NCBI RefSeq assembly: GCF_032444005.1
Contig: NC_091283.1
Span: forward strand, 28,954,001-29,018,000
Reading direction: 5' to 3'
Source of the DNA: Ranitomeya imitator
Taxonomy: Eukaryota
DNA: 64,000 bases
A program made the translations under genes and the position numbers. Shown here piece by piece: positions 3,768 to 42,871 of the stretch. The first letter of the stretch is position 1, and every line of letters starts with the position of its first letter. Under the pieces are notes generated by a model. That model made no database searches and was not told the origin of the DNA. It worked only from the letters and a program-made list of their open reading frames with translations.

Positions 3768-4513
3768 CAATGTTCCAGTGTTGGATCTGAGCTTCTGGAT
3801 CTTTCCTGTGGCCTGCTGCTCTGCTTAGATAAGTGCTGCTTGTTTTTGTTGCTACTTTTTCTGTCCAGCTTGTCCATTCGTTTTGCTGGTAGCTCTGAGA
3901 CGCAAAGGGTGTACCGCCGTGCCGTTAGTTCGGCACGGTGGGTCTTTTTGCCCCCTTTGCGTGGTTTTTTGCTTTAGGGTTTTTTGTAGACTGCAAAGTT
4001 CTCTTTGCTATCCTCGCTCTATCTAGAATATCGGGCCTCGCTTTGCTGAATCTATTTCATCCCTACGTTTGTCTTTTCATCTTGCTAACAGTCATTATAT
4101 GTGGGGGGCTGCCTTTTCCTTTGGGGTATTTCTCTGAGGCAAGCCAGGCTTAATTTTCTATCTTCAGGCTAGTCAGTTTCTCAGGTTGTGCCGAGTTGCC
4201 TAGGTAGTGTCAGGCGCAATCCACAGCCACTTTTAGTTGTGTTTAGGATAGGTTCAGGTTTGCAGTCTACAGAGATTCCACGTCTCAGAGCTCGTTCTAT
4301 TGTTTTTGGGTTATTGTCAGATCACTGTATGTGCTCTGATTGCTGGCACACTGTGTTACTGGATTGCCTGCATAACAGTACTAGGAGCCAACCTAATGAT
4401 TCTCAATAGAGGGAAAAAAGAAGTTCTGACATCATTTTTTTTTTCTCTCAGCTCTGTGTTCAGTTTTTTTTTTTCCCCTAGACATTTGGGTGTTTCAGGA
4501 CACAGGTGTGGAC

Positions 4514-7500
4514 ATGGATATTCAGGGTCTGTGCTCTTCAATGGATAATCTCGTTACAAATGTACAAAAGATTCAAGATGCTATTGATCAGAAATCTATG
4601 TTAGAACCAAGAATTCCTATTCCTGATTTGTTTTTTGGTGATAGAACTAAGTTTCTTAATTTCAAAAATAATTGTAAGCTATTTCTGGCCTTGAAACATC
4701 ATTCTTCTGGTAATCCTATTCAACAGGTTTTGATTATTATTTCTTTTTTGCGCGGCGACCCTCAGGACTGGGCATTTTCTCTTGCGCCAGGAGACCCTGC
4801 ATTGAGTAATGTCAATGCGTTTTTCCTGGCGCTCGGATTGCTTTACGATGAGCCTAATTCAGTGGATCAGGCTGAGAAAAATTTGCTGGCTTTGTGCCAG
4901 GGTCAGGATGATATAGAAGTATATTGTCAGAAATTTAGGAAATGGTCAGTACTCACTCTGTGGAATGAATCTGCGCTGGCAGCTTTGTTCAGAAAGGGTC
5001 TCTCTGAGGCTCTTAAGGATGTCATGGTGGGTTTTCCTATGCCTGCTGGTTTGAATGAGTCTATGTCTTTGGCCATTCAGATCGGTCGACGCTTGCGCGA
5101 GCGTAAATCTGTGCACCATTTGGCGGTATTGTCTAAGATTAAACCTGAGCCTATGCAGTGCGATAGGACAATGACCAGAGTTGAACGGCAAGAACACAGA
5201 CGTCTGAATGGTCTGTGTTTCTACTGTGGTGATTCCACTCATGCTATTTCTGATTGTCCTAAGCGCACTAAGCGGTTCGATAGGTCTGCTGTCATTGGTA
5301 CTGTACAATCCAAATTCCTTCTGTCCATTACCTTAATATGCTCTTTGTCATCGTATTCTGTCATGGCGTTTGTGGATTCAGGCGCTGCCCTGAATCTGAT
5401 GGATTTGGATTATGCTAAACGTTGTGGGTTTTTCTTGGAGCCTTTGCGGTGTCCTATTCCGTTGAGAGGAATTGATGCTACACCTTTAGCCAAGAATAAA
5501 CCTCAGTACTGGACCCAGCTGACCATGTGCATGGCTCCTGCACATCAGGAAGTTATTCGCTTTCTGGTGCTACATAATTTGCATGATGTGGTCGTGTTGG
5601 GGTTGCCATGGCTGCAAACCCATAATCCTGTATTGGATTGGAACTCTATGTCGGTATCCAGCTGGGGTTGTCAGGGGGTACATGGTGATGTTCCATTTTT
5701 GTCTATTTCGTCATCCACTCCTTCTGAGGTCCCAGAGTTCTTGTCTGATTATCAGGATGTATTTGAAGAGCCCAAGTCCGATGCCCTACCTCCGCACAGG
5801 GATTGTGATTGTGCTATCAATTTGATTCCTGGTAGTAAATTCCCTAAAGGTCGATTATTTAATTTTTCCGTGCCTGAACACGCCGCTATGCGCAGTTATG
5901 TGAAGGAATCCCTGGAGAAGGGACATATTCGCCCATCGTTATCACCACTGGGAGCAGGGTTCTTTTTTGTAGCCAAGAAGGATGGTTCGCTGAGACCGTG
6001 TATTGATTACCGCCTTCTTAATAAGATCACTGTTAAATTTCAGTATCCCTTGCCATTGTTATCTGACTTGTTTGCTCGGATTAAGGGGGCTAGTTGGTTC
6101 ACTAAGATAGATCTTCGTGGTGCGTATAATCTGGTGAGAATCAGGCAAGGAGATGAATGGAAAACTGCATTCAATACGCCCGAGGGTCATTTTGAGTATC
6201 TAGTGATGCCGTTCGGACTTGCCAATGCTCCATCTGTGTTTCAGTCTTTTATGCATGACATCTTCCGTGAGTATCTGGATAAATTCCTGATTGTTTACTT
6301 GGATGACATTTTGATCTTCTCGGATGATTGGGACTCTCATGTGAAGCAGGTCAGAATGGTTTTCCAGGTCCTGCGTGCTAATTCTTTGTTTGTGAAGGGA
6401 TCAAAGTGTCTCTTCGGTGTGCAGAAAGTTTCATTTTTGGGGTTCATCTTTTCCCCTTCTACTATCGAGATGGATCCGGTTAAGGTCCAAGCCATCCAGG
6501 ATTGGACTCAGCCGACATCTCTGAAAAGTCTGCAAAAATTCCTGGGCTTTGCTAATTTTTATCGTCGCTTCATTTGTAATTTTTCTAGCATTGCCAAACC
6601 ATTGACCGATTTGACCAAGAAGGGTGCTGATTTGGTTAATTGGTCTTCTGCTGCTGTGGAAGCTTTTCAGGAGTTGAAGCGTCGTTTTTGTTCTGCCCCT
6701 GTGTTGTGTCAACCAGATGTTTCTCTTCCGTTCCAGGTCGAGGTTGATGCTTCTGAGATTGGAACAGGGGCGGTTTTGTCACAGAGAGGTTCTGGTTGCT
6801 CAGTGTTGAAACCATGTGCTTTCTTTTCCAGGAAGTTTTCGGCTGCTGAACGTAATTATGATGTGGGCAACCGAGAGTTGCTGGCCATGAAGTGGGCATT
6901 CGAGGAATGGCGTCATTGGCTTGAAGGAGCTAAGCATCGCGTGGTGGTATTGACTGATCATAAGAACCTTACTTATCTCGAGTCTGCCAAGCGCTTGAAT
7001 CCTAGACAGGCCCGTTGGTCGTTATTTTTTGCCCGCTTCGATTTTTTGATTTCGTACCTTCCGGGCTCTAAAAATGTGAAGGCGGATGCTCTGTCTAGGA
7101 GTTTTGTGCCCGACTCTCCGGGTTCATCTGAGCCGGTGAGTATCCTCAAGGAAGGAGTCATTGTGTCTGCCATCTCCCCTGATTTCCGGCGAGTGTTGCA
7201 AAAATTTCAGGCGAATAAACCTGATCGTTGTCCGGCGGAGAAATTGTTCGTCCCTGATAGGTGGACTAGTAAAGTTATCTCGGAACTTCATTGTTCGGTG
7301 TTGGCTGGTCATCCTGGAATCTTTGGTACCAGAGAGTTAGTGGCTAGATCCTTCTGGTGGCCATCTCTGTCACGGGATGTACGTGCTTTTGTGCAGTCCT
7401 GTGGGATTTGTGCTAGGGCTAAGCCCTGCTGTTCACGTGCCAGTGGGTTGCTTTTGCCCTTGCCGGTCCCAAAGAGGCCTTGGACACATATTTCGATGGA

Positions 7501-8696
7501 TTTCATTTCTGACCTTCCCGTTTCTCAAAAGATGTCTGTCATTTGGGTGGTCTGTGATCGCTTTTCTAAAATGGTCCATCTGGTGCCCTTGGTTAAATTG
7601 CCTTCCTCCTCTGATTTGGTGCCTTTGTTCTTCCAGCATGTGGTTCGTTTGCATGGCATTCCTGAGAATATGGTTTCTGACAGAGGTTCCCAGTTTGTTT
7701 CAAGGTTTTGGCGAGCCTTTTGTGGTAGGATGGGCATTGACTTGTCTTTTTCCTCGGCTTTCCATCCTCAGACTAATGGCCAGACCGAACGAACCAATCA
7801 GACCTTGGAAACATATCTGAGATGTTTTGTTTCTGCTGACCAGGATGATTGGGTGTCCTTTTTGCCGTTGGCTGAGTTCGCCCTTAATAAATCGGGCCAG
7901 CTCGGCTACCTTGGTCTCTCCATTTTTCTGCAATTCTGGGTTCCATCCTCGTTTCTCTTCAGGACAGGTTGAGTCTTCGGACTGTCCTGGTGTGGATTCT
8001 GTGGTGGACAGGTTGCAGCAGATCTGGACTCAGGTAGTGGACAATTTGACCTTGTCCCAGGAGAAGGCTCAACTTTTCGCTAATCGCAGACGCCGTGTGG
8101 GTCCCCGACTTCGTGTTGGGGATCTGGTTTGGTTATCTTCTCGTCATATTCCTATGAAGGTTTCCTCTCCTAAATTTAAACCTCGTTTTATTGGTCCGTA
8201 TAGGATTTCTGAGATTCTCAATCCTGTGTCTTTTCGTCTGACCCTCCCAGACTCCTTTTCCATACATAATGTGTTCCATAGGTCGTTGTTGCGGAGATAC
8301 GTGGCACCTATAGTTCCTTCTGTTGAGCCTCCTGCCCCGGTTTTGGTGGAGGGGGAATTGGAGTATATTGTGGAGAAAATTTTGGATTCTCGTGTTTCTA
8401 GACGGAAACTCCAGTATCTGGTTAAATGGAAGGGTTATGCTCAGGAAGATAATTCCTGGGTTTTTGCCTCTGATGTCCATGCTCCAGATCTTGTTCGTGC
8501 CTTTCATGTGGCTCATCCTGGTCGGCCTGGGGGCTCTGGTGAGGGTTCGGTGACCCCTCCTCAAGGGGGGGGTACTGTTGTGAATTCTGTGGCTGAATTC
8601 ACTCCTGTGGTCACAAGTGGTACTGCAGCTTCTGAGCTTCCTCCCTCAGGTGTTCTGGTGAGCTCGTTGGCTGCTTTGTTATTTAACTCCGCCTGA
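4514..8696 (+). pseudogene. Gag-PR-RT-RNaseH-IN-chromodomain polyprotein of copy A with a single +1 frameshift
   Basis: CCHC knuckle CFYCGDSTHAISDC, protease FVDSGA, RT YLDD, integrase HHCC/DDE, GPY motif, chromodomain EYIVEKILDSR...YLVKWKGY; extra A at 7889-7891 relative to copy C. Confidence 0.93.
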
Positions 8697-10071
8697 TTCT
8701 GTCTTCCTTGCTCCTAGTCAATGTTCCAGTGTTGGATCTGAGCTTCTGGATCTTTCCTGTGGCCTGCTGCTCTGCTTAGATAAGTGCTGCTTGTTTTTGT
8801 TGCTACTTTTTCTGTCCAGCTTGTCCATTCGTTTTGCTGGTAGCTCTGAGACGCAAAGGGTGTACCGCCGTGCCGTTAGTTCGGCACGGTGGGTCTTTTT
8901 GCCCCCTTTGCGTGGTTTTTTGCTTTAGGGTTTTTTGTAGACTGCAAAGTTCTCTTTGCTATCCTCGCTCTATCTAGAATATCGGGCCTCGCTTTGCTGA
9001 ATCTATTTCATCCCTACGTTTGTCTTTTCATCTTGCTAACAGTCATTATATGTGGGGGGCTGCCTTTTCCTTTGGGGTATTTCTCTGAGGCAAGCCAGGC
9101 TTAATTTTCTATCTTCAGGCTAGTCAGTTTCTCAGGTTGTGCCGAGTTGCCTAGGTAGTGTCAGGCGCAATCCACAGCCACTTTTAGTTGTGTTTAGGAT
9201 AGGTTCAGGTTTGCAGTCTACAGAGATTCCACGTCTCAGAGCTCGTTCTATTGTTTTTGGGTTATTGTCAGATCACTGTATGTGCTCTGATTGCTGGCAC
9301 ACTGTGTTACTGGATTGCCTGAATAACAGCAGGGTGTCAGTCTGTTTGGTTCCTCTTGTCCCTGTGTTGCTTCACACAGGGAGTGCTCTGCAGACAACTG
9401 CTCTGTCTGCTTCCAAACCAACACTGACACACCTCCCCCTCTACTACAGGGCTTTTAATCAGTCACTGCTTCACCATTCTAATTACAGCTACACCTGTGT
9501 CTGCAGTACACCCTCATGGCCTCACTATGTGCTCTCCAGAATGCGCATAGAGGCAAACAGCACCCCCTAGCTGTAACAGGGGTCACTGCCTCACATATGG
9601 TAGTGGATGAAACCCTGCCTATCTCTACCTAATCCCACAGTCTGTTCCTACACCATGCAACACAATACAAACTAGCATGTTTTTGTTAATAATTATGTTC
9701 CATGTGAAATAGCAATTCTCTATTCTCACACCTCTGTGTTGTTCCATTCCTACGAGATTCATTCTTCATATCTATGATACATACATGCTAGCCACCTTAG
9801 GGAGAGACCCAAGCTGGGCTTAATGTAGCGGGACGAAAGAGACCGAAAAGCCCTCTACTTAAAGGAAATACATAGTGGATGCTTTCCTGAAACGGAAAGT
9901 ACTTGCAAGCAGCATAATACAAAGAATAGCAGGTTTACCCAGAATCCTTTGCAGTAGGCGGAGCTATGCAAATCATCTCTTTCCACCCCTGTCTAATCCA
10001 CAGCGCTTGGAACCGCCAAGCGTGCAATGCTGCGGATTAGTTTCTAAATTTACACAGCCAACCAATTCCTA

Positions 10072-10115
10072 CCTGTGGACACGTGTTTCGGGCTTTAGGC
10101 CCTCATCAGCACAGG
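10072..10115 (-). ncRNA. Type I hammerhead ribozyme with an intact core
   Basis: CCUGUG-CUGAUGA-GGGC(CUAAA)GCCC-GAAA-C(ACGU)GUC-CACAGG; stem I extended by 10054-10069 pairing with 10119-10134. Confidence 0.88.
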
Positions 10116-10631
10116 GCTGGAATTGGTTGGCTGTATGGAGTGGGGCTCGGTGTGCAAGCGATACATACATGCTAGCCACCTTAGGGAGAGACCCAAGTTG
10201 GGCTTAATGTAGCGGGACGAAAGAGACCGAAAAGCCCTCTACTTAAAGGAAATACATAGTGGATGCTTTCCTGAAACGGAAAGTACTTGCAAGCAGCATA
10301 ATACAAAGAATAAATTTAGAAACTAATCCGCAGCATTGCACGCTTGGCGGTTCCAAGCGCTGTGGATTAGACAGGGGTGGAAAGAGATGATTTGCATAGC
10401 TCCGCCTACTGCAAAGGATTCTGGGTAAACCTGCTATTCTTTGTATTATGCTGCTTGCAAGTACTTTCCGTTTCAGGAAAGCATCCACTATGTATTTCCT
10501 TTAAGTAGAGGGCTTTTCGGTTTCTTTCGTCCCGCTACATTAAGCCCAACTTGGGTCTCTCCCTAAGGTGGCTAGCATGTATGTATCGCTTGCACACCGA
10601 GCCCCACTCCATACAGCCAACCAATTCCAGC

Positions 10632-10675
10632 CCTGTGCTGATGAGGGCCTAAAGCCCAAAACACGTGTCCACAGG
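10632..10675 (+). ncRNA. Second hammerhead copy with G12>A (GAAA>AAAA), probably inactive
   Basis: CCTGTGCTGATGAGGGCCTAAAGCCCAAAACACGTGTCCACAGG. Confidence 0.75.
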
Positions 10676-11051
10676 TAGGAATTTGTTGGCTGTGTAAATT
10701 TAGAAACTAATCCGCAGCATTGCACGCTTGGCGGTTCCAAGCGCTGTGGATTAGACAGGGGTGGAAAGAGATGATTTGCATCATATCTATGAGTAATTTG
10801 ACAACTGAGTAGATCTCCCGACCCGAACTTAATAACCTCATAGACATACTGTGCATGAGGCTGTTCGGTTCAGGCTGGTAGACCTGAGGCAAGCCCATAC
10901 ACAGACCTTGTATGACAGATGTCTGAATTTGGCCTTACACAGAAGTGTAATCTTGCAGAAGATGATGTAGCATTGACCTAAAAATCTGTATTCTAAATAA
11001 TATCATATCTGATAGTGATGTATTATCTAATGCACCATTTATCTTTCTCAG

Positions 11052-14159: not shown

Positions 14160-14632
14160 GGACTGACACAATAGGTAATCAGCAGTGTCAGGAAGATATG
14201 ACTTATGTTTCCATTTATTCTGTGGGACCAAGCCCTGGTTCAAAGTTCTCACAACACATCTAGATAAGTTCCTTGGGCGGTCTAGTTTCCAATATGGGGT
14301 CACTTGTGGGAGGTTTCTACTGTTTAGGTACATCAGGGGCTCTGCAAATGCAACGTGACGCCTGCAGACCATTCCATCTAAGTCTCCATTCCAAATGGCG
14401 CTCCTTCCCTTCCGACCTCTGCCATGCACCCAAACGGTGGTTCCCCACCACATATGGGGTATCACAGTACTCAGGACAAATTGGACAACAAATTTTGTGG
14501 ACTAATTTCTCCTGTTACCCTTGGGAAAATACAAAACTGGGGGCTAAAAAATAATTTTTGTGGAAAAAAAAAAGAATTTTTATTTTCTCAGCTCTGCGTT
14601 ATGAACAGTAGTGAAACACTTGGGGGTTCAAC
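14160..14632. mobile_element. Internal fragment of a non-autonomous DNA transposon (piggyBac-like), cut at gypsy B
   Basis: Recognised repeat-type sequence ending abruptly at the LTR; family assignment from memory only. Confidence 0.45.
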
Positions 14633-17600
14633 TGTTATGATTAGGTAATTCAGAACCACAATGGACCTTGAAGTTCAGAGCACACAAAGTGACCTGACAA
14701 TAACCAAAAGACATAGGACAAGCTCTGAGACGTGGGAACTCTGCTGACCGCAATCCCTAATCCTATCATACCACACTAGAGATAGCCGTGGAGCGCTCCT
14801 GACCAGACCTAGGCGCCTCAGGCACAGCCTGAGAAACTAGCTAGCCCTGAAGATAGAAAAATAAGCCTACCTTGCCTCAGAGAAATTCCCCAAAGGAAAA
14901 GGCAGCCCCCCACATATAATGACTGTGAGTAGAGATGAAAATACAAACGCAGAGATGAAATAGATTGAGCAAAGTGAGGCCCGACTTACTGAATAGACCG
15001 AGGATAGGAAAGAGAGCTTTGCGGTCAGCACAAAATCCTACAAACAACCACGCAGAGGGGCAAAAAGACCCTCCGCACCGACTAACGGTACGGAGGTGCT
15101 CCCTCTGCGTCCCAGAGCTTCCAGCAAGGAAGAAAAACCAATTAAGCAAGCTGGACAGAAAAAATAGCAAAACAAAAAATAACACAAGCAAAACTTAGCT
15201 TATGCAGAGCAGACGGCCACAGGAACGATCCAGGAGGAAGCAAGACCAATACTAGAACATTGACTGGAGGCCAGGAGCAAAGCACTAGGTGGAGTTAAAT
15301 AGAGCAGCACCTAACGACTTCACCACATCACCTGAGGAAGGAAACTCAGAAGCTGCAGTACCACTCGTGACCACAGGAGGGAGCTCTGCCACAGAATTCA
15401 CAACAGTACCCCCCCCCTTGAGGAGGGGTCACCGAACCCTCACCAGAGCCCCCAGGCCGACCAGGATGAGCCACATGAAAGGCACGAACAAGATCGGCAG
15501 CATGGATATCAGAGGCAAAGACCCAGGAATTATCTTCCTGACCATAACCCTTCCACTTAACCAGATACTGGAGTTTCCGTCTCGAAACACGAGAATCCAA
15601 AATCTTCTCCACAATATACTCCAACTCCCCCTCCACCAAAACCGGGGCAGGAGGATCAACAGATGGAACCATAGGTGCCACGTATCTCCGCAACAATGAC
15701 CTATGGAATACGTTATGGATGGAAAAAGAATCTGGAAGGGTCAAACGAAAAGACACAGGATTAAGAACCTCAGAAATCCTATACGGACCAATGAAACGAG
15801 GCTTAAACTTAGGAGAGGAAACCTTCATAGGAATATGACGAGATGACAACCAAACCAAATCCCCAACACGAAGTCGGGGACCCACACAGCGTCTGCGATT
15901 AGCGAAACGTTGAGCCTTCTCCTGGGACAAGGTCAAATTGTCCACTACATGAGTCCAAATCTACTGTAACCTGTCCACCACCGTATCCACACCAGGACAG
16001 TCCGAAGACTCAACCTGCCCTGAAGAGAAACGAGGATGGAACCCAGAGTTGCAGAAAAACGGCGAAACCAAGGTAGCCGAGCTGGCCCGATTATTAAGGG
16101 CGAACTCAGCCAAAGGCAAGAAGGACACCCAATCATCCTGATCAGCAGAAACAAAGCATCTCAGATATGTTTCCAAGGTCTGATTGGTTCGTTCGGTCTG
16201 GCCATTAGTCTGAGGATGGAAAGCCGAGGAAAAAGACAAATCAATGCCCATCCTAGCACAAAAAGCTCGCCAAAACCTCGAAACAAACTGGGAACCTCTG
16301 TCAAAAACGATGTTCTCTGGAATGCCATGTAAACGAACCACATGCTGGAAGAACAATGGCACCAAATCAGAGGAAGAAGGTAATTTAGACAAGGGTACCA
16401 AATGGATCATCTTAGAGAAGCGATCACAAACCACCCAAATGACCGACATTTTTTGAGAGACGGGGAGATCCGAAATAAAATCCATAGAGATATATGTCCA
16501 AGGCCTCTTCGGGACCGGCAAGGGCAAAAGCAACCCACTGGCACGAGAACAGCAGGGCTTAGCCCGAGCACAAATCCCACAGGACTGCACAAAAGAACGC
16601 ACATCCCGCAACAGAGACGGCCACCAAAAGGATCTAGCCACTAAATCTCTGGTACCAAAGATTCCAGGATGACCAGCCAACACCGAACAATGAACCTCAG
16701 AGATAACTTTATTCGTCCACCTATCAGGGACAAACAGTTTCTCCGCTGGGCAATGATCAGGTTTACTAGCCTGAAATTTTTGCAGCACCCGCCGTAAATC
16801 AGGGGAGATGGCAGACAAAATTACTCCCTCTTTGAGAATACCCGCCGGCTCAGACAAACCCGGAGAGTCGGGCACAAAACTCCTAGACAGGGCATCCGCC
16901 TTCACATTTTTAGAGCCCGGAAGGTACGAAACCACAAAGTCAAAACGGGAGAAAAACAGCGACCAACGAGGATTCAACCGTTTGGCAGACTCAAGATAAG
17001 TCAAGTTCTTGTGATCAGTCAAGACCACCACGCGATGCTTAGCTCCTTCAAGCCAATGACGCCACTCCTCGAATGCCCACTTCATGGCCAGCAACTCTCG
17101 ATTGCCCACATCATAATTACGTTCAGCAGGCGAAAACTTCCTGGAAAAGAAGGCACATGGCTTCATCACCGAGCAATCAGTACTTCTCTGCGACAAAACA
17201 GCCCCCGCTCCAATTGCAGAAGCATCAACCTCGACCTGGAACGGAAGCGAAACATCTGGTTGACACAACACAAGCGCAGAAGAAAAACGACGCTTTAACT
17301 CTTGAAAAGCTTCCACAGCAGCAGAAGACCAATTGACCACATCAGCACCCTTCTTGGTCAAATCGGTCAATGGTTTAGCAATACTAGAAAAATTACAGAT
17401 AAAGCGACGATAAAAATTAGCAAAGCCCAGGAACTTTTGCAGACTCTTCAGAGATGTAGGCTGGGTCCAATCATAGATGGCCTGGACCTTAACAGGGTCC
17501 ATCTCGATAGTAAAAGGGGAAAAAATGAACCCCAAAAATGAAACCTTCTGAACACCAAAGAGACACTTTGATCCCTTCACAAACAAAGAATTAGCACGCA

Positions 17601-20411
17601 GGACCTGGAACACCATTCTGACCTGCTTCACATGAGACTCCCAATCATCCGAGAAGACCAAAATATCATCCAAGTATACAATCAGGAATTTATCCAGGTA
17701 CTCTTGGAAGATGTCATGCATAAAGGACTGAAACACCGATGGAGCATTGGCAAGTCCGAAAGGCATAACTAGGTACTCAAAGTGGCCCTCGGGCGTATTA
17801 AATGCAGTTTTCCATTCATCGCCCCGCTTAATACGCACAAGATTATACGCACCACGAAGATCTATCTTGGTGAACCAACTAGCCCCCTTGATCCGAGCAA
17901 ACAAATCAGATAGCAGCGGCAAGGGGTACTGAAATTTGACCGTGATTTTATTTAGAAGGCGGTAATCTATACAAGGTCTCAGCGAACCATCTTTCTTGGC
18001 CACAAAAAAGAACCCCGCTCCCAATGGCGACGATGACGGGCGAATATGACCCTTCTCCAAGGACTCCTTCACGTAACTCCGCATAGCGGCGTGCTCAGGT
18101 ACAGATAAATTAAACAGTCGACCTTTAGGAAACTTACTACCAGGAATCAAATCGATAGCACAATCACAATCCCTATGCGGAGGTAGGGCATTGGACTTGG
18201 GCTCATCAAATACATCCGGTAATCAGACAAGAACTCTGGGACCTCAGAAGGGGTGGATGACGAAATAGACAGAAATGGGACATCACCATGTACCCCCGAC
18301 AACCCCAGCTGGACACAGACATTGATTTCCAATCTAATACTGGGTTATGGACTTGTAGCCATGGCAACCCCAACACGACCACATCATGCAGATTATGCAG
18401 CACCAGGAAGCGAATATCCTCCTGATGTGCAGGAGCCATGCACATGGTCAGCTGGGTCCAGTACTGAGGCTTATTCTTGGCCAAAGGCGTAGCATCAATT
18501 CCTCTCAATGGAATAGGACACTGCAAGGGCTCCAAGAAAAACCCACAACGCCTGGCATACTCCAAGTCCATCAAATTCAGGGCAGCGCCTGAATCCACAA
18601 ATGCCATGACAGAATAAGATGACAAAGAGCAGATCAAAGTAACGGACAAAAGAAATTTTGACTGTACCGTACCAATGGTGGCAGACCTAGCGAACCGCTT
18701 AGTGCGCTTAGGACAATCGGAGATAGCATGAGTGGAATCACCACAGTAGAAACACAGCCCATTCTGACGTCTGTGTTCTTGCCGTTCAACTCTGGTCAAA
18801 ATCCTATCGCACTGCATAGGCTCAGGTTTATGCTCGGATAATACCGCCAAATGGTGCACAGATTTACGCTCACGCAAGCGTCGACCGATCTGAATGGCCA
18901 AAGACATAGACTCATTCAGACCAACAGGCATGGGAAATCCCACCATGACATCCTTAAGGGCTTCAGAGAGCCCCTTTCTGAAGATAGCTGCCAGCGCACC
19001 TTCATTCCACTGAGTGAGCACGGACCACTTTCTAAACTTCTGACAATAAATCTCTATCTCATCCTGACCCTGACACAGAGCCAGCAAATTTTTCTCTGCC
19101 TGATCCACCGAATTAGGTTCATCATACAGCAATCCGAGCGCCAGGAAAAACGCATCAACATTACACAATGCAGGATCTCCTGGCGCAAGGGAAAATGCCC
19201 AGTCTTGAGGGTCACCACGTAATAAAGAAATAATGATCTTAACTTGTTGAACTGGGTCACCAGAGGAGCGAGGTTTCAAAGCCAGAAACAGTTTACAATT
19301 ATTTTTAAAACTCAGAAATTTTGCTCTATCTCCAGAAAACAAATCAGGAATAGGAATTCTTGGTTCTAACATAGAATTCTGAACCACAAAGTCTTGAATA
19401 TTTTGTACTCTTGCAGTGAGATGATCCACACATGAAGACAGACCTTTAATGTCCATCACTACACCTGTGTCCTGAACTACCCAAATGTCTAGGGGAAAAA
19501 AAGGCAAAACACAGTGCAAAGAAAAAAAAATTGTCTCAGAACTTCTTTTTTCCCTCTATTGAGAAGCATTAGTACTTTGGGCCTCCAGTACTGTTATGAT
19601 TAGGTAATTCAGAACCACAATGGACCTTGAAGTTCAGAGCACACAAAGTGACCTGACAATAACCAAAAGACATAGGACAAGCTCTGAGACGTGGGAACTC
19701 TGCTGACCGCAATCCCTAATCCTATCATACCACACTAGAGATAGCCATGGAGCGCTCCTGACCAGACCTAGGCGCCTCGGGCACAGCCTGAGAAACTAGC
19801 TAGCCCTGAAGATAGAAAAATAAGCCTACCTTGCCTCAGAGAAATTCCCCAAAGGAAAAGGCAGCCCCCCACATATAATGACTGTGAGTAGAGATGAAAA
19901 TACAAACGCAGAGATGAAATAGATTGAGCAAAGTGAGGCCCGACTTACTGAATAGACCGAGGATAGGAAAGATAACTTTGCGGTCAACACAAAACCCTAC
20001 AAACAACCACGCAGAGGGGGCAAAAAGACCCTCCGCACCGACTAACGGTACGGAGGTGCTCCCTCTGCGTCCCAGAGCTTCCAGCAAGCAAGAAAAACAA
20101 TATAGCAAGCTGGACAGAAAAAATAGCAAACAAAAACAACACAAGCAAAACTTAGCTATTGCAGAATAGACAGACCACAGGAACGATCCAGGAGGAAGCA
20201 AGACCAATACTAGAACATTGACTGGAGGCAAGGATCAAAGCACTAGGTGGAGTTAAATAGAGCAGCACCTAACGACTTAACCTCATCACCTGAGGAAGGA
20301 AACTCAGAAGCCGCAGTACCACTCACATCCACCAACGGAAGCCCATAGACAGAAACAGCCGAAGTACCACTTGTGACCACAGGAGGGAGCTCGACCACAG
20401 AATTCACAACA
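14633..20411 (-). mobile_element. Ty3/gypsy chromovirus copy B (recombinant, no TSD)
   Basis: 3' LTR 14633-15405 (773 bp), 5' LTR 19592-20411 (820 bp), PPT next to 15405; flanks TTCAAC and CCAGAG do not match. Confidence 0.95.
15346..19456 (-). pseudogene. Gag-pol of copy B with frameshifts and a nonsense codon
   Basis: Same domains as copy A; frameshifts near 18215-18290, 9-nt deletion (NPR-WSL), TAG at 15961-15963. Confidence 0.9.
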
Positions 20412-22949: not shown

Positions 22950-23430
22950 TTGTAATCAGTTCTATTCCCCCATCCCACCACACACACTGACTGCTGTGAG
23001 ATGTATTTGTAATCACACTCAGCTCAGTTCTATTGCCCCATCCCACCATACACACAGACTGCTGTGAGATGTGTTTGGAATCACACTCAGCTCAGTTCTA
23101 TTTTCCCCGACACACACACTGACTGCGGTGAGATGTGTTTGGAATCACACTTGGCTCAGTTCTATTCCCCCAACCCACCACACACACTGACTGCTGTGAG
23201 ATGTTTGGAATCACACTCAGCTCAGTTCTATTTCCCCCGCCCCCGACACACACACACTGACCGCTGTGAGATGTGTTTATAATCGAACTCAGCTCAGTTC
23301 TATTCCCCAACCCACCACACACACAGACTGCTGTGAGATGTGTTTGGAATCACACCCAGCTCAGTTCTATTCCCCCCTCCCCGACATACACACTGACTGC
23401 TGTGAGAAGTGTTTGTAATTGCACTCAGCT
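22950..23430. repeat. ~55-60-bp minisatellite
   Basis: Units CACACACACTGACTGCTGTGAGATGTGTTTGGAATCACACTCAGCTCAGTTCTATTCCCC. Confidence 0.9.
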
Positions 23431-23499
23431 CTGCTCTATACTACACAGCAGCTGTCTGTCATTACATCTCACAACAGGAGAATGTTCTTCTACCCTTCT

Positions 23500-23760: not shown

Positions 23761-24369
23761 GGTTCGGGCTAATGCTGCCTATGAAAGGTTGTCATCTTGC
23801 TAAATCTCTAAGGAAATAAAGCCAGAACTTTGGAAGTAGTCAGGACTAGGCCTCTATGGGAGATAACTGAAGCTTCATCCAGACTGGCAGTGTGAAAAAA
23901 AGCAAATAAACACACAAAAAGAGACCCCGAAATAGGAAGAGCACCTGTGCTTGAGTCAGGTGTAAGTGGACTGTGGACAGACCCATAGACTTTTGGCTGA
24001 GCCCCTTATACTAGTCTGCCCTCCTTTGAGCAATCGAGGGGAGGTGTTAACACTTAAAACTTCACCTTGATGGTAGTTACAACATATTAAAACTTTTTTA
24101 TATACTTTGGATACCCAGAATTCATTTTAGAACCAATGGGAGAACATTGTTGCTGTTGGAGAGAAAGAGCTCTGAAGTTAACCCTGTCAGCACAGCATCA
24201 CACCATTGTACCATACCACTTAGTATGGGGTTCAGCAGTAATATCAGAAATTTATTACTACTCTAATTAAAACAAAATATACAGTATAAATAATTTATTT
24301 AGGTCAGGGATTAGCTGGGTAAAAAAAGTAAAAAAAAGGCAGGAATTATGTTTTGTTAATACCATATTT

Positions 24370-26165
24370 TGGGGGCAGTATGGGGGGAGAGTGTGAGGGG
24401 AGACAGTGGGAGAAATGTAAAAGTATGAGGGAGAAATGTGTGAGAGGACAGTATGGAAATGAAATGTGTGAGGGGACAGTATGGGAGAGAAATGTGTGAG
24501 AGGAGAGAATGGGAGAGAAATGTGTGAGGGGACAGTATGTGGGAGAAGTGTGTGAGGGGACAGTATGGGGGGAGAGTGTGAGGGGAGACAGTGGGAGAAA
24601 TGTAAAAGTATGAGGGAGAAATGTGTGAGAGGACAGTATGGGAATGAAATGTGAGAGGAGAGAATGGGAATGAAATGTGTGAGGGGACAGTATGGGAGAG
24701 AAATGTGTGAGAGGAGAGAATGGGAATGAAATGTGTGAGGGGACAGTATGGGAGAGAAATCTGTGAGAGGAGAGTATGGGAGAGAAATGTGTGAGGGGAC
24801 AGTATGTGAGAGAAAAAGGTAAACAATGTTAGGCACACCGGCGCTCCCAAAAAGCGTTGAATATAGGTTATAGCTGCAGGTGCCTAGACAGCTGCTGCGC
24901 TCAGTCTGTCAGTACCAAGAAAAGGCAAACAAAAATTACAACAAAAGGTCACCGCGCTACCTTATACAGAATGGGATAAGTAAGAAATTGGAAAAGACCG
25001 TTCCTATATGTACCTAAAGGCTTGGGTGCACAAAAGGATACAACAAGTAATGCATAACCAATCTGGGCAGGATATACTGATTGCAAGTCACTACCACACA
25101 ATGATAATGTCGATCATGCACCAGGGAAAAAGTAGCGCAATATGTCCCAATCACAAAAAACATTTTCTATGTGTAAAAAGGGAACACTTACTGATGTGAT
25201 GTGGTTGCAGTACCAGTACTGTGTCTTGTCTGCGTTATGGCGTGCTGGCGAAGGAGACAATCAGCGCCGCTAGACTGTGGCGGTGTGTGGAAGGGGCGTG
25301 GAGCCCTTGGTGATGTTACCCAGACCACGCCCCTTCCACACCCCGCTACAGTCTAGCGGCGCCTTCGGCCGAGGCCCGCCGTCTAGTCTTTCTGGCGCAC
25401 GCAGTGGTATCAGTCCAGCAAGGGAGGACGCTCCCCAGACTTCCACTAACCCTGCATCGCCGATTGAACCCCCGACTCTGGACGGCATTTACGGAGGCAC
25501 TGCACGTCAGTGTGCTTCACGCAGCAATGTGCACACCTGCACTAGGAGTCAGCTGATTGTCTCCTTCGCCAGCACGCCATGACGCAGACAAGACACAGTA
25601 CCGGTACTGCAACCACATCACATCAGTAAGTGTTCCCTTTTTACACATAGAAAAAAGTTTTTTGTGATTGGGACATATTGTGCTACTTTTTCCCTGGTGC
25701 TTGATCGACATTATCATTGTTTGGTAGTGACTTGCAATCAATATATCCTGCCCAGATTGGTTATGCATTACTTGTTGTATCCTTTTGTGCACCCAAGTCT
25801 TTAGGTACATATAGGAACGGTCTTTTCCAATTTCTTACTTATCCCATTCTGTATAAGGTACCGTGGTGACCTTTTGTTGTAATTAGTATGTAGGAGAAAT
25901 GTGTGAGGGGACAGTATGGAGGGGAAATATATGAGGGGACAGTATGGGAATGAAATGTGTGAGAGGACAGTATGAGGGAGAAATTTGTGAGAGGACAGTA
26001 TGGGAATGAAATGTGTGAGGGTACAGTATGGGAGAGAAATGTGTGAGAGGACTGTATGAGGGAGAAATGTGTGAGGGGACAGTATGAGGGAGAAATGTGT
26101 GAGGGGACAGTATGTGGGAGAAATGTGTGGGGGGACAGTATGGAGGGGAAATGTATGAGGGGACA
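24370..26165. repeat. GA-rich ~28-bp minisatellite split by a fold-back insertion
   Basis: GGGAGAGAAATGTGTGAGGGGACAGTAT units at 24370-24810 and 25890-26165. Confidence 0.9.
24934..25884. repeat. Long fold-back with ~332-bp inverted arms and a nested GC-rich hairpin
   Basis: Arms 24934-25265 and 25552-25884; inner hairpin 25265-25361; mirror ORFs MYLKAWVHKR (+) and MYLKTWVHKR (-). Confidence 0.9.
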
Positions 26166-26530
26166 GTCTGGAAAAGTCTCAAAGATGCATTTCCAGAAGT
26201 GATTTCCACTTTAAAAACTTTAAAAAAAACTCTGTGAGGTCACGGTCTGTTATACAGTACCAGGACAGCTGCGAAGACCTCAGTTTGAATATTAGTTGTA
26301 TATTAAGAAGCCACCAACCTGGTAATATACATCATAGGTGGCATGAAAAAAAAATGTGATTACCTGCAGTCTGACTGAGACTTTATTTTTGTACCTTGAG
26401 AGGGCAATGTAATGGCGAGAGCGGACTTGGAGAGAATTACACACTTCTTAATAAATCTGGTTCATCTGAAATTACCTGTGTAAATCACTTTTCTCCTTCT
26501 ATGTGAGCAAGTGGACATAAGAATATACCA

Positions 26531-27514
26531 GTGGGTGAATTTATCAGGCTTAAAAGAAATTGTAGTTCAGATGCACAATTCACACAGGAAACTGAGTCTG
26601 CAGTTTTCAGACTTAAAGATCGCGGTTATCCTAATTGGATGCTACACAGAGCAAAATCAGTGACAAAAGACATTGATAGGAAGTCTTTATTATGGAGTGA
26701 TAATGAGGATTCAGGGTCTCTTTCTAGGAACCCCAACAAGAATAATAATAAAATGAAAAAAATTAAAAGAAAAAGGCTTAATGAGAATAAACACACAGAG
26801 TCTGCCTCTCACTCTCTGAGTACGATAAATTTTTCCACAGTTTATAGTCCGCAGTATGCAGAAATAATTCAAATTGTGAAAAAGTATGTTCCTATTTTAT
26901 ATAATGATGTGAAGCTAGCACATATTTTAGATCGTACTCACATACGATATCTTGCCAAAAAAGCACCTTCCTTACGTGACATCCTATCCCCGAGTCTTTA
27001 TCTCCACAGTAAATTGACTGCAGGAAATAGTGCCTGGTTAACATATAAGGTTTTTTTTAAATGTGGTCACCACCCGTGTAAAACGTGTAATTTCGTAAGA
27101 AAAACTACTAGTTTCACCTCTAGTGTGACAGGCATTACTTATCCGATTCGAACGCACATGAATTGCAACTCAGAAGGTGTCATTTACTTGATAGAATGCG
27201 ACTTATGTAAACTGCAATATGTGGGCTGCACAGTGGGCCCTCTAAAAAGAAGGTTTTGTAAGCATATCTCAGAATCTGCACTTAATAATACGTCACATCA
27301 CATTTCTGCAGTCTCTCACCACTGCAAAACAATCCATGCAGGTAATACCAGCATGATTAAACTGACTGCTATTGAAAAAGTGCATAAACCTCCTAGAGGC
27401 GGTGACCATAGACGTAAGATATTAAATCGTGAATCCTTTTGGATATTTTCTCTACAGTCAAGGGTGCCCTTAGGGCTGAATAAACGTCTTGACCTCATTT
27501 TGCAGTTAGATTAA
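26531..27514 (+). CDS. Penelope-like ORF C-terminus: RT thumb, CCHH zinc region and GIY-YIG endonuclease (5' truncated)
   Basis: GEFIRLKRNCS, CGHHPCKTC, VIYLIEC...QYVGCT...RRF..H, RESFWI; open for 327 codons. Confidence 0.88.
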   Translation: MGEFIRLKRNCSSDAQFTQETESAVFRLKDRGYPNWMLHRAKSVTKDIDRKSLLWSDNEDSGSLSRNPNKNNNKMKKIKRKRLNENKHTESASHSLSTINFSTVYSPQYAEIIQIVKKYVPILYNDVKLAHILDRTHIRYLAKKAPSLRDILSPSLYLHSKLTAGNSAWLTYKVFFKCGHHPCKTCNFVRKTTSFTSSVTGITYPIRTHMNCNSEGVIYLIECDLCKLQYVGCTVGPLKRRFCKHISESALNNTSHHISAVSHHCKTIHAGNTSMIKLTAIEKVHKPPRGGDHRRKILNRESFWIFSLQSRVPLGLNKRLDLILQLD

Positions 27515-27808
27515 TGTAGTAATTTCATATCTTTATTTAACATACCCCTTTTTTTTTTTTTTTTTTTTTCCTCCATAAGAAGGTGATATTTAATATTGTA
27601 CACACTGTGAATTGGTTCTATTACTCCGGCTAATGTAATTTTTTGATACACCGTTGTGGTTCTTTTTCCATAGACATGTCTTTCTCTTTTGCGGTTCACA
27701 GGGGGTTAATCTAATGAATGTTCTGATTGCCCACCTGAGTTTTAATCTAAGCACTTGTTGTTTTAGTGTTCTGTGTTGTATAAAATGTTAATATGTGGTT
27801 CCATTTTC

Positions 27809-27848
27809 ATGCCATGACTAAGACCTGATGGTCGAAACGCGTCGGCGT
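27809..27848 (+). ncRNA. Minimal type I hammerhead variant (A3-U8 core)
   Basis: AUGCC-AUGACUA-A-GACC(UGAU)GGUC-GAAA-C(GC)GUC-GGCGU, ~300 bp downstream of the Penelope stop codon. Confidence 0.7.
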
Positions 27849-28010
27849 TGACCACCTGGGACCCCCATCTCTTTTTTGCAAATGTTTGCATTTTAAAGTG
27901 TTTTCAATAAATTGACTTTTTAGAAGATCCATGCTGGAGATTATTTTTTCTTTTTCATTGCTGGCAAGTGGACATTTGCATCTTTTTTAATTTGCATTTT
28001 AATTAATGTA

Positions 28011-30259
28011 CCGTATATACTCGAGTATAAGCCGACCCGAGTATAAGCCGACCCCCCTAATTTTGCCACAAAAAACTGGGAAAACTTATTGACTCGAGTA
28101 TAAGCCTAGGGTGGAAATGCAGCATTTACCGGTGAATTTCAAAAATAAAAATAGATCATTATTTCCCCATAGCTGTGCCATATAGTGCTCTACACCGTTC
28201 ATTATTTCCCCATAGCTGTGCCCCATATAGTGCTCTGCACCGTTCATTATTTCCCCATAGCTGTGCCATATACGGTGCTCTACACCGTTCATTATTTCCC
28301 CATAGCTGTGCCCCATATAGTGCTCTGCACCGTTCATTGTGCCCCATAGCTGTGCCATATACGGTGCTCTGCACCGTTCATTGTGCCCCATTGCTGTGCC
28401 ATATACGGTGCTCTGCACCGTTCATTGTGCCCCATTGCTGTGCCATATACGGTGCTCTGCACCGTTCATTGTGCCCCATTGCTGTGCCATATACGGTGCT
28501 CCGCACCGTTCATTGTGCCCCATAGCTGTGCTGTGCCATATACGGTGCTCTGCACCGTTCATTGTGCCCCATTGCTGTGCCATATACGGTGCTCCGCACC
28601 GTTCACTGTGCCCCATAGCTGTGCTGTGCCATATACGGTGCTCTGCACCGTTCACTGTGCCCCATAGCTGTGCTGTGCCATATACGGTGCTCTGCACCGT
28701 TCACTGTGCCCCATAGCTGTGCTGTGCCATATACGGTGCTCTGCACCGTTCACTGTGCCCCATAGCTGTGCTGTGCCATATACGGTGCTCTGCACCGTTC
28801 ACTGTGCCCCATAGCTGTGCTGTGCCATATACGGTGCTCTGCACTGTTCACTGTGCCCCATACATAGCTGTGCTGTGCCATATACGGTGCTCTGCACCGT
28901 TCACTGTGCCCCATAGCTGTGCTGTGCCATATACGGTGCTCTGCACCGTTCACTGTGCCCCATAGCTGTGCTGTGCCATATACGGTGCTCTGCACCGTTC
29001 ACTGTGCCCCATAGCTGTGCTGTGCCATATACGGTGCTCTGCACCGTTCACTGTGCCCCATAGCTGTGCTGTGCCATATACGGTGCTCTGCACCGTTCAC
29101 TGTGCCCCATACATAGCTGTGCTGTGCCATATACGGTGCTCTGCACCGTTCACTGTGCCCCATACATAGCTGTGCTGTGCCATATACGGTGCTCTGCACC
29201 GTTCACTGTGCCCCATAGCTGTGCTGTGCCATATACGGTGCTCTGCACCGTTCACTGTGCCCCATACATAGCTGTGCTGTGCCATATACGGTGCTCTGCA
29301 CCGTTCGCTGTGCTGTGCCATATACGGTGCTCTGCACCGTTCACTGTGCCCCATAGCTGTGCTGTGCCATATACGGTGCTCTGCACCGTTCACTGTGCCC
29401 CATAGCTGTGCTGTGCCATATACGGTGCTCTGCACCGTTCACTGTGCCCCATAGCTGTGCTGTGCCATATACGGTGCTCTGCACCGTTCACTGTGCCCCA
29501 TAGCTGTGCTGTGCCATATACGGTGCTCTGCACCGTTCACTGTGCCCCATAGCTGTGCTGTGCCATATACGGTGCTCTGCACCGTTCACTGTGCCCCATA
29601 GATGTTCCACATAAATTTGTGCCGCCGCTGCCGCAATAAAGAAAAAAAACACATACTCACCTCCCTTGATTGCAGCTCCCGGCGTCTCGTTCCGGCGCCT
29701 CCATCTTCCCGGCGTCTCTGCTCTGACTGATCAGGCAGAGGGCGCCGCGCACACTATATGCGTCATCGCGCCCTCTGCCTGATCAGTCAGAGAGCAGAGA
29801 CGCCGGGAAGATGGAGGCGCCGGCCGGGAAGATGGATCGGCGCCCGGCGGCTGGAACGAGGACAGGTGAATATGCTATACTCACCTAGTCCTGGCGATCC
29901 TCGCGCTGTCCCCTCCTGTCTTCGGTGCCGCAGCTTCTTTCTCTATCAGCGGTCACCGGCACCGCTGATTAGAGAAATGAATAAGCGGCTCCGCCCCTAT
30001 GGGAGGTGGAGCCGCTTATTCATTTCTGTAATGAGCGGTCCCACGTGACCGCTGAAGAGAGGAAGAAACTGCAGTGCCGAAGCCCGTGGGACGGCAGGGA
30101 CAGCGCCAGGATCGCTGGGACTAGGTAAGTATACCTCAGCGCCCTCAGCCCCTCACCTGCCGACCCCACCGCTACCGTGACTCGAGTATAAGCCGAGGGG
30201 GGCACTTTCAGCCCAAAAATTTGGGCTGAAAATCTCGGCTTATACTCGAGTATATACGG
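28011..30259. mobile_element. Complete pogo/Tigger-like MITE with an expanded internal array
   Basis: TA|CCGTATATACTCGAGTATAAGCCG...CGGCTTATACTCGAGTATATACGG|TA. Confidence 0.85.
28158..29600. repeat. ~41-51-bp tandem array inside the MITE
   Basis: GCTGTGCCATATACGGTGCTCTGCACCGTTCACTGTGCCCCATA units with a gradient of variants. Confidence 0.95.
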
Positions 30260-35959: not shown

Positions 35960-37760
35960 GCAATCAGCATAAATAAGTACACCCCTTTCGAAAAGTACAA
36001 TTTTAATCAATATCTCACTGAACACGAACAATTTTCCAAATTTTGACAAAACTCAGTCTCATAAAACATTTTTTTCACTTATAACATGACAGTGAGGTTA
36101 ATAACATAACTTTCTTTACAAAATGTTGTTTTACTGAAATTGGTTGATGCAAAAATGAGTACACCCACATCAAATACTCCTATGTCTAGTATTGTGTATG
36201 TGAGTCGCCCCCAGGGCTGTGGGGATACTCGGTACCGGGTCCGGTCGCACTTAAAGGGGATGTCACAGTGGCTGCGACCCGGTCCGTGGCCCTGGGCGCT
36301 CAATTAAAAGGGGAAAGATCTTTTAAGGGGATTTGATAAGTCTATGTTCGTGATGCTACCTGTGGATCTCGCTCAGACGGGACCAACGCTGCTTAAAGGG
36401 GTCCTCTGGGGTGATGTTGTTGCAGCAAGATGGTAACGCTTCCCACAGGTGAAGCGGGGTCCCCAGGGCTCCCAAGGTGTATGGCAAGGATGATGGGTTG
36501 CCGGTAAATAACGGAGGACACAGGGCTGCAGTCTTTACCTGGTGTACTGAAGTTGTTGTCAGCCTCAGTCCAGGGTACCGGCAACAGGTCCAGAAGGAGT
36601 CCAGGCAGTGTGAAAACAAGTCGAAGTCCCCTTTGCAGGTCAGGTTAAGAGCCTTCCACTATGCGCTGGTATTCTGGTCCCTTGCTGCTTATAGTTTGCA
36701 GGCAAGGTACCCCTTTCTCTCCTGTCCTGGGACAGTACCTGCACGGTAGGCAACTTGAGCCGTTCTCTTGGGGTCTCTGACGTGGTAACTCCAGGCTCCA
36801 ACTGTTGTTGTACCTCAGGCATTGTATGGGCAATTTGCTTAGCGTTCTATGCCCTCCGGTTCTGCTATGGGGCTTGCAGCTCCCCACAGCCTCGGGCTCC
36901 CGGCACCCGATCTCTGCGCTATGGCTCCTAGAAGGCCCAATTGCAGCCTCCTTGAGCTCTCAATCTCTCCTCTGCTCCTTCCCTTTCACTGTTCACTCAC
37001 ACACTGTCTGCTCTCACTGGTCTCCTGGGACCAACTGTCTGACTCCTCCTCCAGACCAGGATCTTTATTTAAGGAAGCTACCCTAAAACCGGGTTTAGAG
37101 CTCCCCCTCCTGGCCTGATTGAGAAGGTGTTATGTGTAAGATTTACCTGCCAAAGGGATTCCACTTGTCTCCAAGCATGGCACTACCCTCCCCGAGAGGA
37201 GGGCAGCATCACTGTGGTACCCAAACTCCTGGGGTGCCACATATGACCTTCCTGATTATTAAGGACGGCACCAAGTCTTCTAGGCCTTTGATGAAGAAGT
37301 TGGTGACATATTGTAGCACCTATCTTTCTCCATTCTACAAGAACGAGCTCTTTTAGACCCCAGTTGCTGGATGGAGAAATATGACAACTTATCTCTTCAG
37401 ACTTCCTCATAGATGTTCGGTTGGGTAAGATCAGGAGACACTTGGCCACTGAATCGCTTTACCCTGTGCTTTTTCAGAAATGCAACAGTGGCCTTAGATG
37501 TTGGAGAGGTATATGTCTACCACAGGCCCAGAGTGATGGTGGCATCTTCTTTTTCACTATAAAGTCACCACATCTGAAAATTCATTATATCATCAATGAA
37601 TTGTAGTTCTCAAACACCAGCAGCGCTCATGCAGCCCCACGTAAGGACAGTGCCTCCACCATGTCTCACTGTAGGCACCAGGCATTTTTCTAAATTAATT
37701 TTTGTAAATGCACAGTGCCTACAGTGAGACCTGGTGCTGTGCACTGCATATACATGTCAC
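35960..37760. mobile_element. Decayed Tc1-like relic hosting a solo LTR
   Basis: TACAGCAATCAGCATAAATAAGTACACCCC TIR-like start; transposase-like remnants after 37245. Confidence 0.5.
36201..37241 (+). mobile_element. Solo LTR (1041 bp), related to 34879-35907
   Basis: TGAGTCGCCC...GGGGTGCCACA with 4-bp TSD TATG. Confidence 0.8.
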
Positions 37761-42711: not shown

Positions 42712-42871
42712 GGTAAACTGACTGAACAGAGAACTAGTCTGAACTGGTGCATAACCAAAAACAACTTACATAGCAAATAGATAAATGGCTGCACTCAACT
42801 ATCTATTTGCTATGTAAGTTGTTTTTGGTTATGCACCAGTTCAGACTAGATCTCTGTTCAGTCAGTTTACC
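42712..42871. repeat. Near-perfect hairpin with 72-bp arms next to the Helitron 3' end
   Basis: Arms 42712-42783 and 42800-42871, one mismatch, loop AATGGCTGCACTCAAC. Confidence 0.9.

Follow-up and report, generated by a model that had tools for sequence, protein, structure and literature searches.

The analysed sequence, referred to here as the window, is a 64,000-nt stretch of the Ranitomeya imitator genome (NCBI RefSeq assembly GCF_032444005.1, contig NC_091283.1, positions 28,954,001 to 29,018,000, forward strand), and the feature of interest is an insertion built from a 384-nt repeat unit, the monomer, which carries a hammerhead ribozyme and resembles the retrozymes of amphibians. Base-by-base reading together with repeat finding gave an insert size of 1,004-1,006 bp, flanked by two exact 12-bp copies of its target site, and resolved it into two arms of opposite orientation, arm A and arm B (Table 1; monomer numbering starts at 10311). 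This is in good agreement with the initial annotation, which had described about 1.0 kb of sequence between 11-12 bp direct repeats, composed of 1.4 copies of the monomer followed by 1.2 inverted copies. A repeat finder placed the repeat spacing inside each arm at exactly 384 nt. The RNA 3' end of arm A adjoins the left duplication and that of arm B the right duplication, both pointing outward as had been proposed. The head-to-head joint lies off the ribozyme cut site (25 nt distant in arm B), and base-by-base comparison of the two arms revealed differences at 3-4 monomer positions.

The two edges of an insert delimited by repeats would share an exact 11-12-mer by chance in about 10^-5 to 10^-6 of trials, indicating that the duplication is not random. 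Its length is 10-12 bp after allowing 1-2 nt of microhomology for each priming site. A single duplication encloses the whole insert, and neither arm alone is bracketed by one. The target site is moderately AT-rich and nearly palindromic, being self-complementary at 10 of its 12 positions, a property found in 0.57% of the 12-mers of the window. A blastn search with the unit detected no further monomer copies within the window, and the flanks are unique there except for the long terminal repeat (LTR) of a gypsy-type element that ends at 9329; hence no paralogous empty site is present in the window. The left neighbourhood at 9400-9680 is built of other high-copy repeats, with a summed depth of at most 94,000 at 9556-9607 in a DNA run described below (X1), and only 9686-9763 is single copy.

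Table 1 Coordinates of the retrozyme insertion, its ribozymes and sequence motifs, and the Penelope-like relic in the window.
Feature	Position	Strand	Description
Left duplication copy	9766-9777	unstranded	TCATATCTATGA; final 2 nt (GA) assignable to arm A cDNA start
Right duplication copy	10781-10792	unstranded	TCATATCTATGA; initial T assignable to arm B end
Arm A	9776-10312	minus	537 nt, 1.40 monomers, unit 125-384 then 1-277; RNA 3' end at 9776
Arm B	10311-10781	plus	471 nt, 1.23 monomers, unit 1-384 then 1-87; RNA 3' end at 10781
Head-to-head joint	10311-10312		2-nt overlap TA; arm A unit position 125 meets arm B position 1
Intact type I hammerhead	10055-10127, core 10072-10115	minus	Predicted cut after GUC, between 10078 and 10077
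Damaged hammerhead	10614-10686, core 10632-10675	plus	Would-be cut between 10669 and 10670
Motif TGCATAGCT	10393-10401	plus	Unit 83-91; arm B ends within next repeat of site, 10777-10781
Motif TGTATCGCT	10157-10165	minus	Unit 272-280; arm A ends within next repeat of site, 9776-9781
Octamer ATTTGCAT	10390-10397 plus, 10774-10781, 9966-9973 minus		One per unit, unit 80-87
Penelope-like copy	26519-27963		1,445 bp, 5'-truncated relic; C-terminal part of the open reading frame with GIY-YIG, minimal hammerhead
Minimal hammerhead variant of the relic	27809-27848
Duplication of the relic	26507-26518 / 27964-27975		12-bp exact duplication GCAAGTGGACAT

Each arm contains one hammerhead, and both could be read base for base as initially annotated, the minus-strand copy intact and the plus-strand copy damaged. 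In arm A, all core positions are canonical (CUGAUGA, GAAA and GUC). Helix I, with CCUGUG as its 5' strand and CACAGG as its 3' strand, is prolonged by a perfect 16-bp inverted repeat (10054-10069 / 10119-10134) with a small internal loop, amounting to 6+16 bp, and helix II consists of 4 bp (GGGC/GCCC) with the loop CUAAA. Helix III is minimal, comprising the 15.1-16.1 pair and a single C-G pair capped with the palindromic loop ACGU, which together form the 8-nt self-complementary stretch ACACGUGU. The plus-strand hammerhead of arm B bears a G12A substitution at 10658 (CpG to CpA) and a G-to-T mismatch in helix I at 10684, and should be inactive. The predicted fold of the 89-nt hammerhead domain has a free energy of -45.5 kcal/mol (z = -7.3). 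A permissive Rfam covariance scan of 1.2 kb, a check suggested by the initial annotation, returned Hammerhead_HH9 (RF02275) as the best match, with 30.1 bits, E = 3e-5 and the full model covered, while a scan of the whole window at gathering score gave no match of any kind and a permissive scan of the whole window, in which the hammerhead was lost to the filters, gave just microRNA-like hairpins below threshold. The HH9 model is based on amniote intronic copies, and the shortfall in score comes from helix III and the flanks, the core not being responsible. A second ribozyme on the opposite strand was also looked for and none was found. Given the minimal helix III and its palindromic loop, the hammerhead is expected to be inefficient by itself and to cleave well in multimeric transcripts, where two copies would pair up as a double hammerhead, and a two-copy co-fold was predicted to form such a structure with an 8-bp intermolecular helix III at -101.7 kcal/mol, compared to -91.0 kcal/mol for two separate monomers. 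The hammerheads of newt and axolotl repeats are of this style and are described as cutting poorly as monomers and well as dimers (PMC7229834).

An exact hammerhead pattern gave no match in metagenome contigs, and a degenerate pattern gave none in genome contigs. The degenerate pattern did retrieve seven metagenome contigs, which were rejected as family members given that they share only the core and differ in helices I and II. Six of them (L001-L006) possess the same type I core and the same palindromic helix III (GAAACACGUGUC), with helices I and II that are different and compensating, whereas L007 matches the pattern with helix I unpaired. From L001-L006, this style of hammerhead is widespread outside frogs.

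The monomer belongs to a large family. Contigs from four public runs, derived from three organisms (codes A, C and F), were aligned to 9400-10159. In X1, the summed contig depth, which is not a copy number, was 5-7x10^5 over the monomer vs 10.3 over the unique flank at 9686-9763, a ratio that points to tens of thousands of unit equivalents. A joint leading from 10159 back by 384 nt to 9776 was present in all four runs and all three organisms, demonstrating that head-to-tail units of exactly this period exist widely. Contigs from the other organisms are about 1% divergent from the present copy. At the core positions of the hammerhead, no reported variant made up 10% or more of the depth, and a 309-nt contig of run X6 spans the entire ribozyme with one difference, so the majority sequence of the family has an intact core in which G12 is kept. 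The unit itself is small and non-coding, has a GC content of 48.7%, is arranged head to tail and lacks an LTR, a primer-binding site and a polypurine tract. Its open reading frames (ORFs) do not exceed 110 amino acids, and no homologues of them were obtained by exact look-up of the 110-amino-acid ORF and a homologue search. The proposal of a non-coding ribozyme family is thus borne out by abundance, by period-384 tandem joints in four runs and by the intact hammerhead of the majority sequence, and the depth of about 6x10^5 vs about 10, together with these joints, answers the concern that the monomer might have no other copies. Two positions set this copy apart. The base at 9814 is private to it, the family base being T, and position 9821 and its equivalents read T in all three overlapping passes, while the family majority is A; this rare T common to all passes argues for an origin of both arms from one source. 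A different inverted joint, at other positions of the unit (window coordinates 9855/10136), was found in one X6 contig, and head-to-head joints are therefore not confined to this locus.

The sole X1 contig over the unique left flank is 447 nt long with a depth of 10.3. Its positions 294-447 match 9624-9777 on the minus strand, and its 293 further bases run rightward and do not match the retrozyme that comes next in the window. The coordinate convention, which puts position 294 of the contig at 9777, was cross-checked on tandem-spanning contigs (records 14 and 20) of the same X1 listing. The match ends at the last base of the left duplication, precisely where a chromosome free of the insert would diverge. 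This contig is no more than suggestive of a chromosome without the insert, an empty allele; the few private changes (4 substitutions in about 1 kb of insert) are consistent with it. From these private substitutions and the likely empty-site contig, the insert is judged to be young, and the likely empty allele suggests that members of the family may even now be transposing in this frog.

These properties closely resemble those of known amphibian elements. Amphibian retrozymes carry this type of hammerhead, form tandem units of 330-350 nt, give rise to circular RNAs and show target duplications longer than 4 bp (PMC7229834). As in the non-LTR retrozymes of axolotl (Rtz_331 / HHR_Amex1) and the Xenopus families, the unit described here is a non-coding tandem repeat of a few hundred nucleotides with a type I hammerhead in which the loops are conserved, helix III has one base pair and the tetraloop is palindromic, so that cutting is expected to need dimers, and it shares with them tens of thousands of copies, a GC content below 50% and co-occurrence with Penelope-like elements (PMC7229834; bioRxiv 10.64898/2026.07.22.740005). 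The latter also holds in this genome, which carries a Penelope-like relic in the window, as is the case for metazoan non-LTR retrozymes. The 12-bp duplication likewise exceeds the 4 bp of plant LTR retrozymes. At 384 nt the unit is longer than those of amphibian retrozymes, and the likeness is one of architecture; furthermore, circular and linear RNAs have been shown in axolotl (PMC7229834), whereas the frog family is known here from DNA sequence. Newt satellite 2, the first hammerhead-bearing amphibian repeat described, has the same hammerhead style and double-hammerhead action but is a caudate repeat of about 330 bp. By analogy, newt satellite 2 and the axolotl Rtz_331/353 repeats would be relatives of the family in kind. 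The locus is a new case of an amphibian non-LTR retrozyme, a kind already described, and constitutes no new class. Term searches in PMC7229834 and bioRxiv 10.64898/2026.07.22.740005 returned no description of the head-to-head architecture or of the end positions.

Taken together, we consider it probable, with fairly high confidence, that the insertion arose in one recent retrotransposition event from a non-coding hammerhead retroelement of 384 nt, namely a non-LTR retrozyme of the amphibian type. The predicted cut site (unit 359/360) is passed once in each arm, and neither arm starts at it. Since both arms also exceed 384 nt, the template was an uncleaved multimer or a religated circle and not a linear monomer, consistent with the earlier proposal of reverse transcription beyond one monomer. 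We infer that this RNA of more than one unit, whether multimeric or circular, was copied by a Penelope-like element's reverse transcriptase with GIY-YIG endonuclease, supplied in trans. This enzyme would cut both strands of the nearly palindromic, moderately AT-rich target 12 bp apart, and each freed 3' hydroxyl would prime complementary DNA (cDNA) synthesis via 1-2 nt of microhomology, with products of 1.2 and 1.4 units. Owing to the near-palindromic target, both strand ends read ...ATGA; that of the top strand may pair with UC at unit 276-277 and copy 537 nt, and that of the bottom strand with at most one U at unit 87 and copy 471 nt. Joining of the two cDNA ends through the 2-nt microhomology TA would then provide inverted arms with outward RNA 3' ends. 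The ribozyme would serve to process multimers into single units ahead of circle ligation, and after insertion the arm B ribozyme probably lost its competence by the CpG transition. The initial annotation had invoked twin priming. The outward orientation of both 3' ends, the duplication of 12 bp and the microhomology at the joint are in keeping with priming from both target strands. One RNA, as in true twin priming, and two RNAs held by a dimeric Penelope enzyme cannot be told apart here, and the arm differences lean slightly towards two RNAs or later mutation.

This scheme draws on what is known of Penelope-like elements. They typically insert as a partial tandem beside which lies an inverted copy truncated at its 5' end (PMC8557442), and the purified Penelope protein of Anolis, PAc, a predicted dimer, is able to cleave both DNA strands and to extend them (PMC11167929). 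Reverse transcription by PAc starts at internal RNA sites that are not homologous to the target, and hammerhead cleavage is unnecessary (PMC11167929). In addition, the retrozymes of vertebrates are found together with Penelope-like elements, to whose pseudo-LTRs (pLTRs) they are related, and retrozymes are regarded as non-autonomous Penelope derivatives, found in all seven amphibians sampled (bioRxiv 10.64898/2026.07.22.740005). The retrozyme insert shares with Penelope, Poseidon and PAc the partial tandem with an adjacent inverted 5'-truncated copy and the variable 5' truncation (PMC8557442, PMC11167929), and with PAc in vitro the cutting and extension of both strands, the internal RNA starts, the little target homology and the moderately AT-rich target. 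The start lies 85-92 nt downstream of the hammerhead cut for PAc (PMC11167929), 112 nt for arm B and 120 nt for the Penelope relic in the window. Unlike Penelope, the retrozyme has no ORF for a reverse transcriptase or endonuclease and its hammerhead is full-sized, not minimal; the second start is 190 nt from the first, compared to 30-40 nt (the 'tail') in PAc, and the target motif differs from the ATT reported for PAc. A comparable layout is known from LINE-1 twin priming, in which inverted 5' and direct 3' segments within one duplication, a microhomology joint and cDNA starts at the target ends are likewise found. In contrast to LINE-1, the insert has no poly(A) at either end and no L1 endonuclease site (TT/AAAA), both of its ends are internal monomer positions, and the enzyme class and start-site rule differ; moreover, both arms exceed the unit length, which is accounted for by a repetitive or circular template.

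The Penelope-like copy at 26.5 kb had been put forward as an example of the enzyme source. In its translation GVIY...YVG is readable, and the GIY-YIG domain gave a Pfam E value of 0.0016, below the cut-off. The relic serves as a local comparator: its 3' end lies 120 nt past its hammerhead cut and that of arm B 112 nt past its own, and the duplications of both insertions are 12 bp long. The relic cannot encode an enzyme, and blastn and global alignment (z about 0) detected no similarity between it and the monomer. The relic documents past activity of such elements in this genome, but not that this dead and unrelated copy was the enzyme source. About 18 nt upstream of its left duplication resemble its own 3' end (a 30-nt repeat of 77% identity), a possible sign that it inserted beside Penelope-like sequence. 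Several minisatellite arrays surround the relic (23006-23446, 24366-24859, 25829-26223 and 28156-29750; periods near 67, 28 and 44-49 bp), and a 233-nt inverted repeat pair is present at 24934-25166 / 25652-25884.

Several points weigh against a Penelope-mediated retrozyme insertion. The only Penelope element in the window is unrelated in sequence to the monomer. The 3-4 arm differences are rather many if one RNA served as the template and the insert is still polymorphic, and the purified Penelope enzyme starts at one fixed adjacent site pair, whereas the starts here are 190 nt apart. The HH9 score of 30.1 bits is lower than the gathering threshold of 52, and the self-cleavage and circular RNA of amphibian retrozymes are, for this family, predictions. 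None of the monomer-bearing runs is recorded as RNA, and in X6, which is guessed to be RNA, the monomer is not enriched over a neighbouring DNA repeat relative to the DNA run; runs guessed to be RNA say nothing either way on expression.

A different origin, which we regard as improbable, would be the remnant of an ORF-bearing Penelope-like element, with two pLTR pieces left head to head after loss of the coding part. The pLTRs of Penelope bear hammerheads and occur in tandem or inverted (PMC8557442, PMC4209133), and Xenopus retrozyme families are sister to pLTRs (bioRxiv 10.64898/2026.07.22.740005), both of which would fit. However, joints of exactly period 384 in four of four runs, at a depth of about 6x10^5, leave no space for an ORF, and no ORF for a reverse transcriptase plus GIY-YIG is present between the repeats, which abut at this period. 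The short ORFs of the monomer have no homologues, its hammerhead has the complete type I structure, including a long helix I, while the Penelope copy in the window has the minimal variant, and the two elements share no similarity. The monomer is thus not found solely as the pLTR of an ORF-bearing Penelope element, the outcome that the initial annotation had named as decisive against an independent retrozyme. It is quite improbable, too, that a piece of a satellite array, arising from an extrachromosomal circle, fold-back replication or template switching, was integrated as a palindrome at the DNA level with no RNA step. The unit is satellite-like in its huge copy number and tandem joints, and it has strong hairpins, at which inverted duplications arise in DNA, but the exact 12-bp duplication of a unique target, the offset of the arms, which form no true palindrome, the ends in a shared motif and the 1-2 nt microhomologies mark insertion by an endonuclease plus primer, and the 9855/10136 inverted joint exists elsewhere at other unit positions. 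Two independent insertions, in which a 1.2-unit copy would have landed precisely beside an older, oppositely oriented copy of 1.4 units, are highly improbable: the family is abundant, homing to their own sequences is possible for Penelope enzymes (PMC11167929) and the arms differ at 3-4 positions, but one duplication brackets the whole and neither arm is bracketed, the joint is a 2-nt overlap and the family-rare variant is common to both arms.

Returning to the single retrotransposition, the positions of its two ends offer a further lead. The monomer contains exactly two matches to TGYATMGCT, half a unit apart, and the outer ends, which are 190 nt apart, fall after the fifth and sixth bases of these two sites; allowing for microhomology, both ends could lie at the same motif position. 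A comparable match occurs at 3 of 367 alternative positions (0.8%). An internal half-unit duplication behind the 190-nt offset was rejected, as none is present, and a rod-shaped circle carrying both ends in the terminal loops was rejected given the branched predicted fold. Both ends are unpaired just 5' of a stem in this fold, to which little weight is given. The perfect octamer ATTTGCAT overlaps the motif at unit 83-91, where arm B ends. By analogy it may be a promoter element, which is a guess. Newt satellite 2 was reportedly shown by Coats, Zhang and Epstein in 1994 to be transcribed from a small nuclear RNA-type promoter with an octamer. More tentatively, and with more doubt than confidence, the retrozyme may carry its own reverse-transcription start signal; the 10/12 palindromic target is what would be expected of a symmetric dimer nicking both strands, with each subunit starting on its own RNA at that signal. 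If true, this would account for the tandem-plus-inverted architecture, and should the signal recur among the family's tens of thousands of copies, Penelope-type choice of start sites could for the first time be read from a natural, non-autonomous passenger. The start motif, the octamer and the nearly palindromic target are leads and not findings.

Animal retrozymes and their dependence on Penelope-like elements have already been described, and the locus is therefore a clean example and not a discovery. Its value lies in a nearly undamaged single insertion in which two starts, the joint and the target are readable to the base. The motif common to the starts, the near-palindromic 12-bp target and the uncut templates of more than one unit lead to testable predictions on Penelope integration, the cycle of which is still called incompletely understood in the Penelope papers cited.

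Elsewhere in the window, three gypsy-type LTR retrotransposon copies are located at 4049-9329, 14632-19925 and 43789-49076, the LTR ends of which are 81-99.7% identical among the three copies (about 330 bp compared); the 3' LTR of the first copy is separated from the retrozyme by 440 bp. Long perfect hairpins at 56403-56472, 42747-42836, 29719-29796 and 37657-37736 gave sub-threshold matches to unrelated microRNA models (three of these hairpins did so on both strands) and are most likely palindromic repeats or ends of miniature inverted-repeat transposable elements, not microRNA genes.

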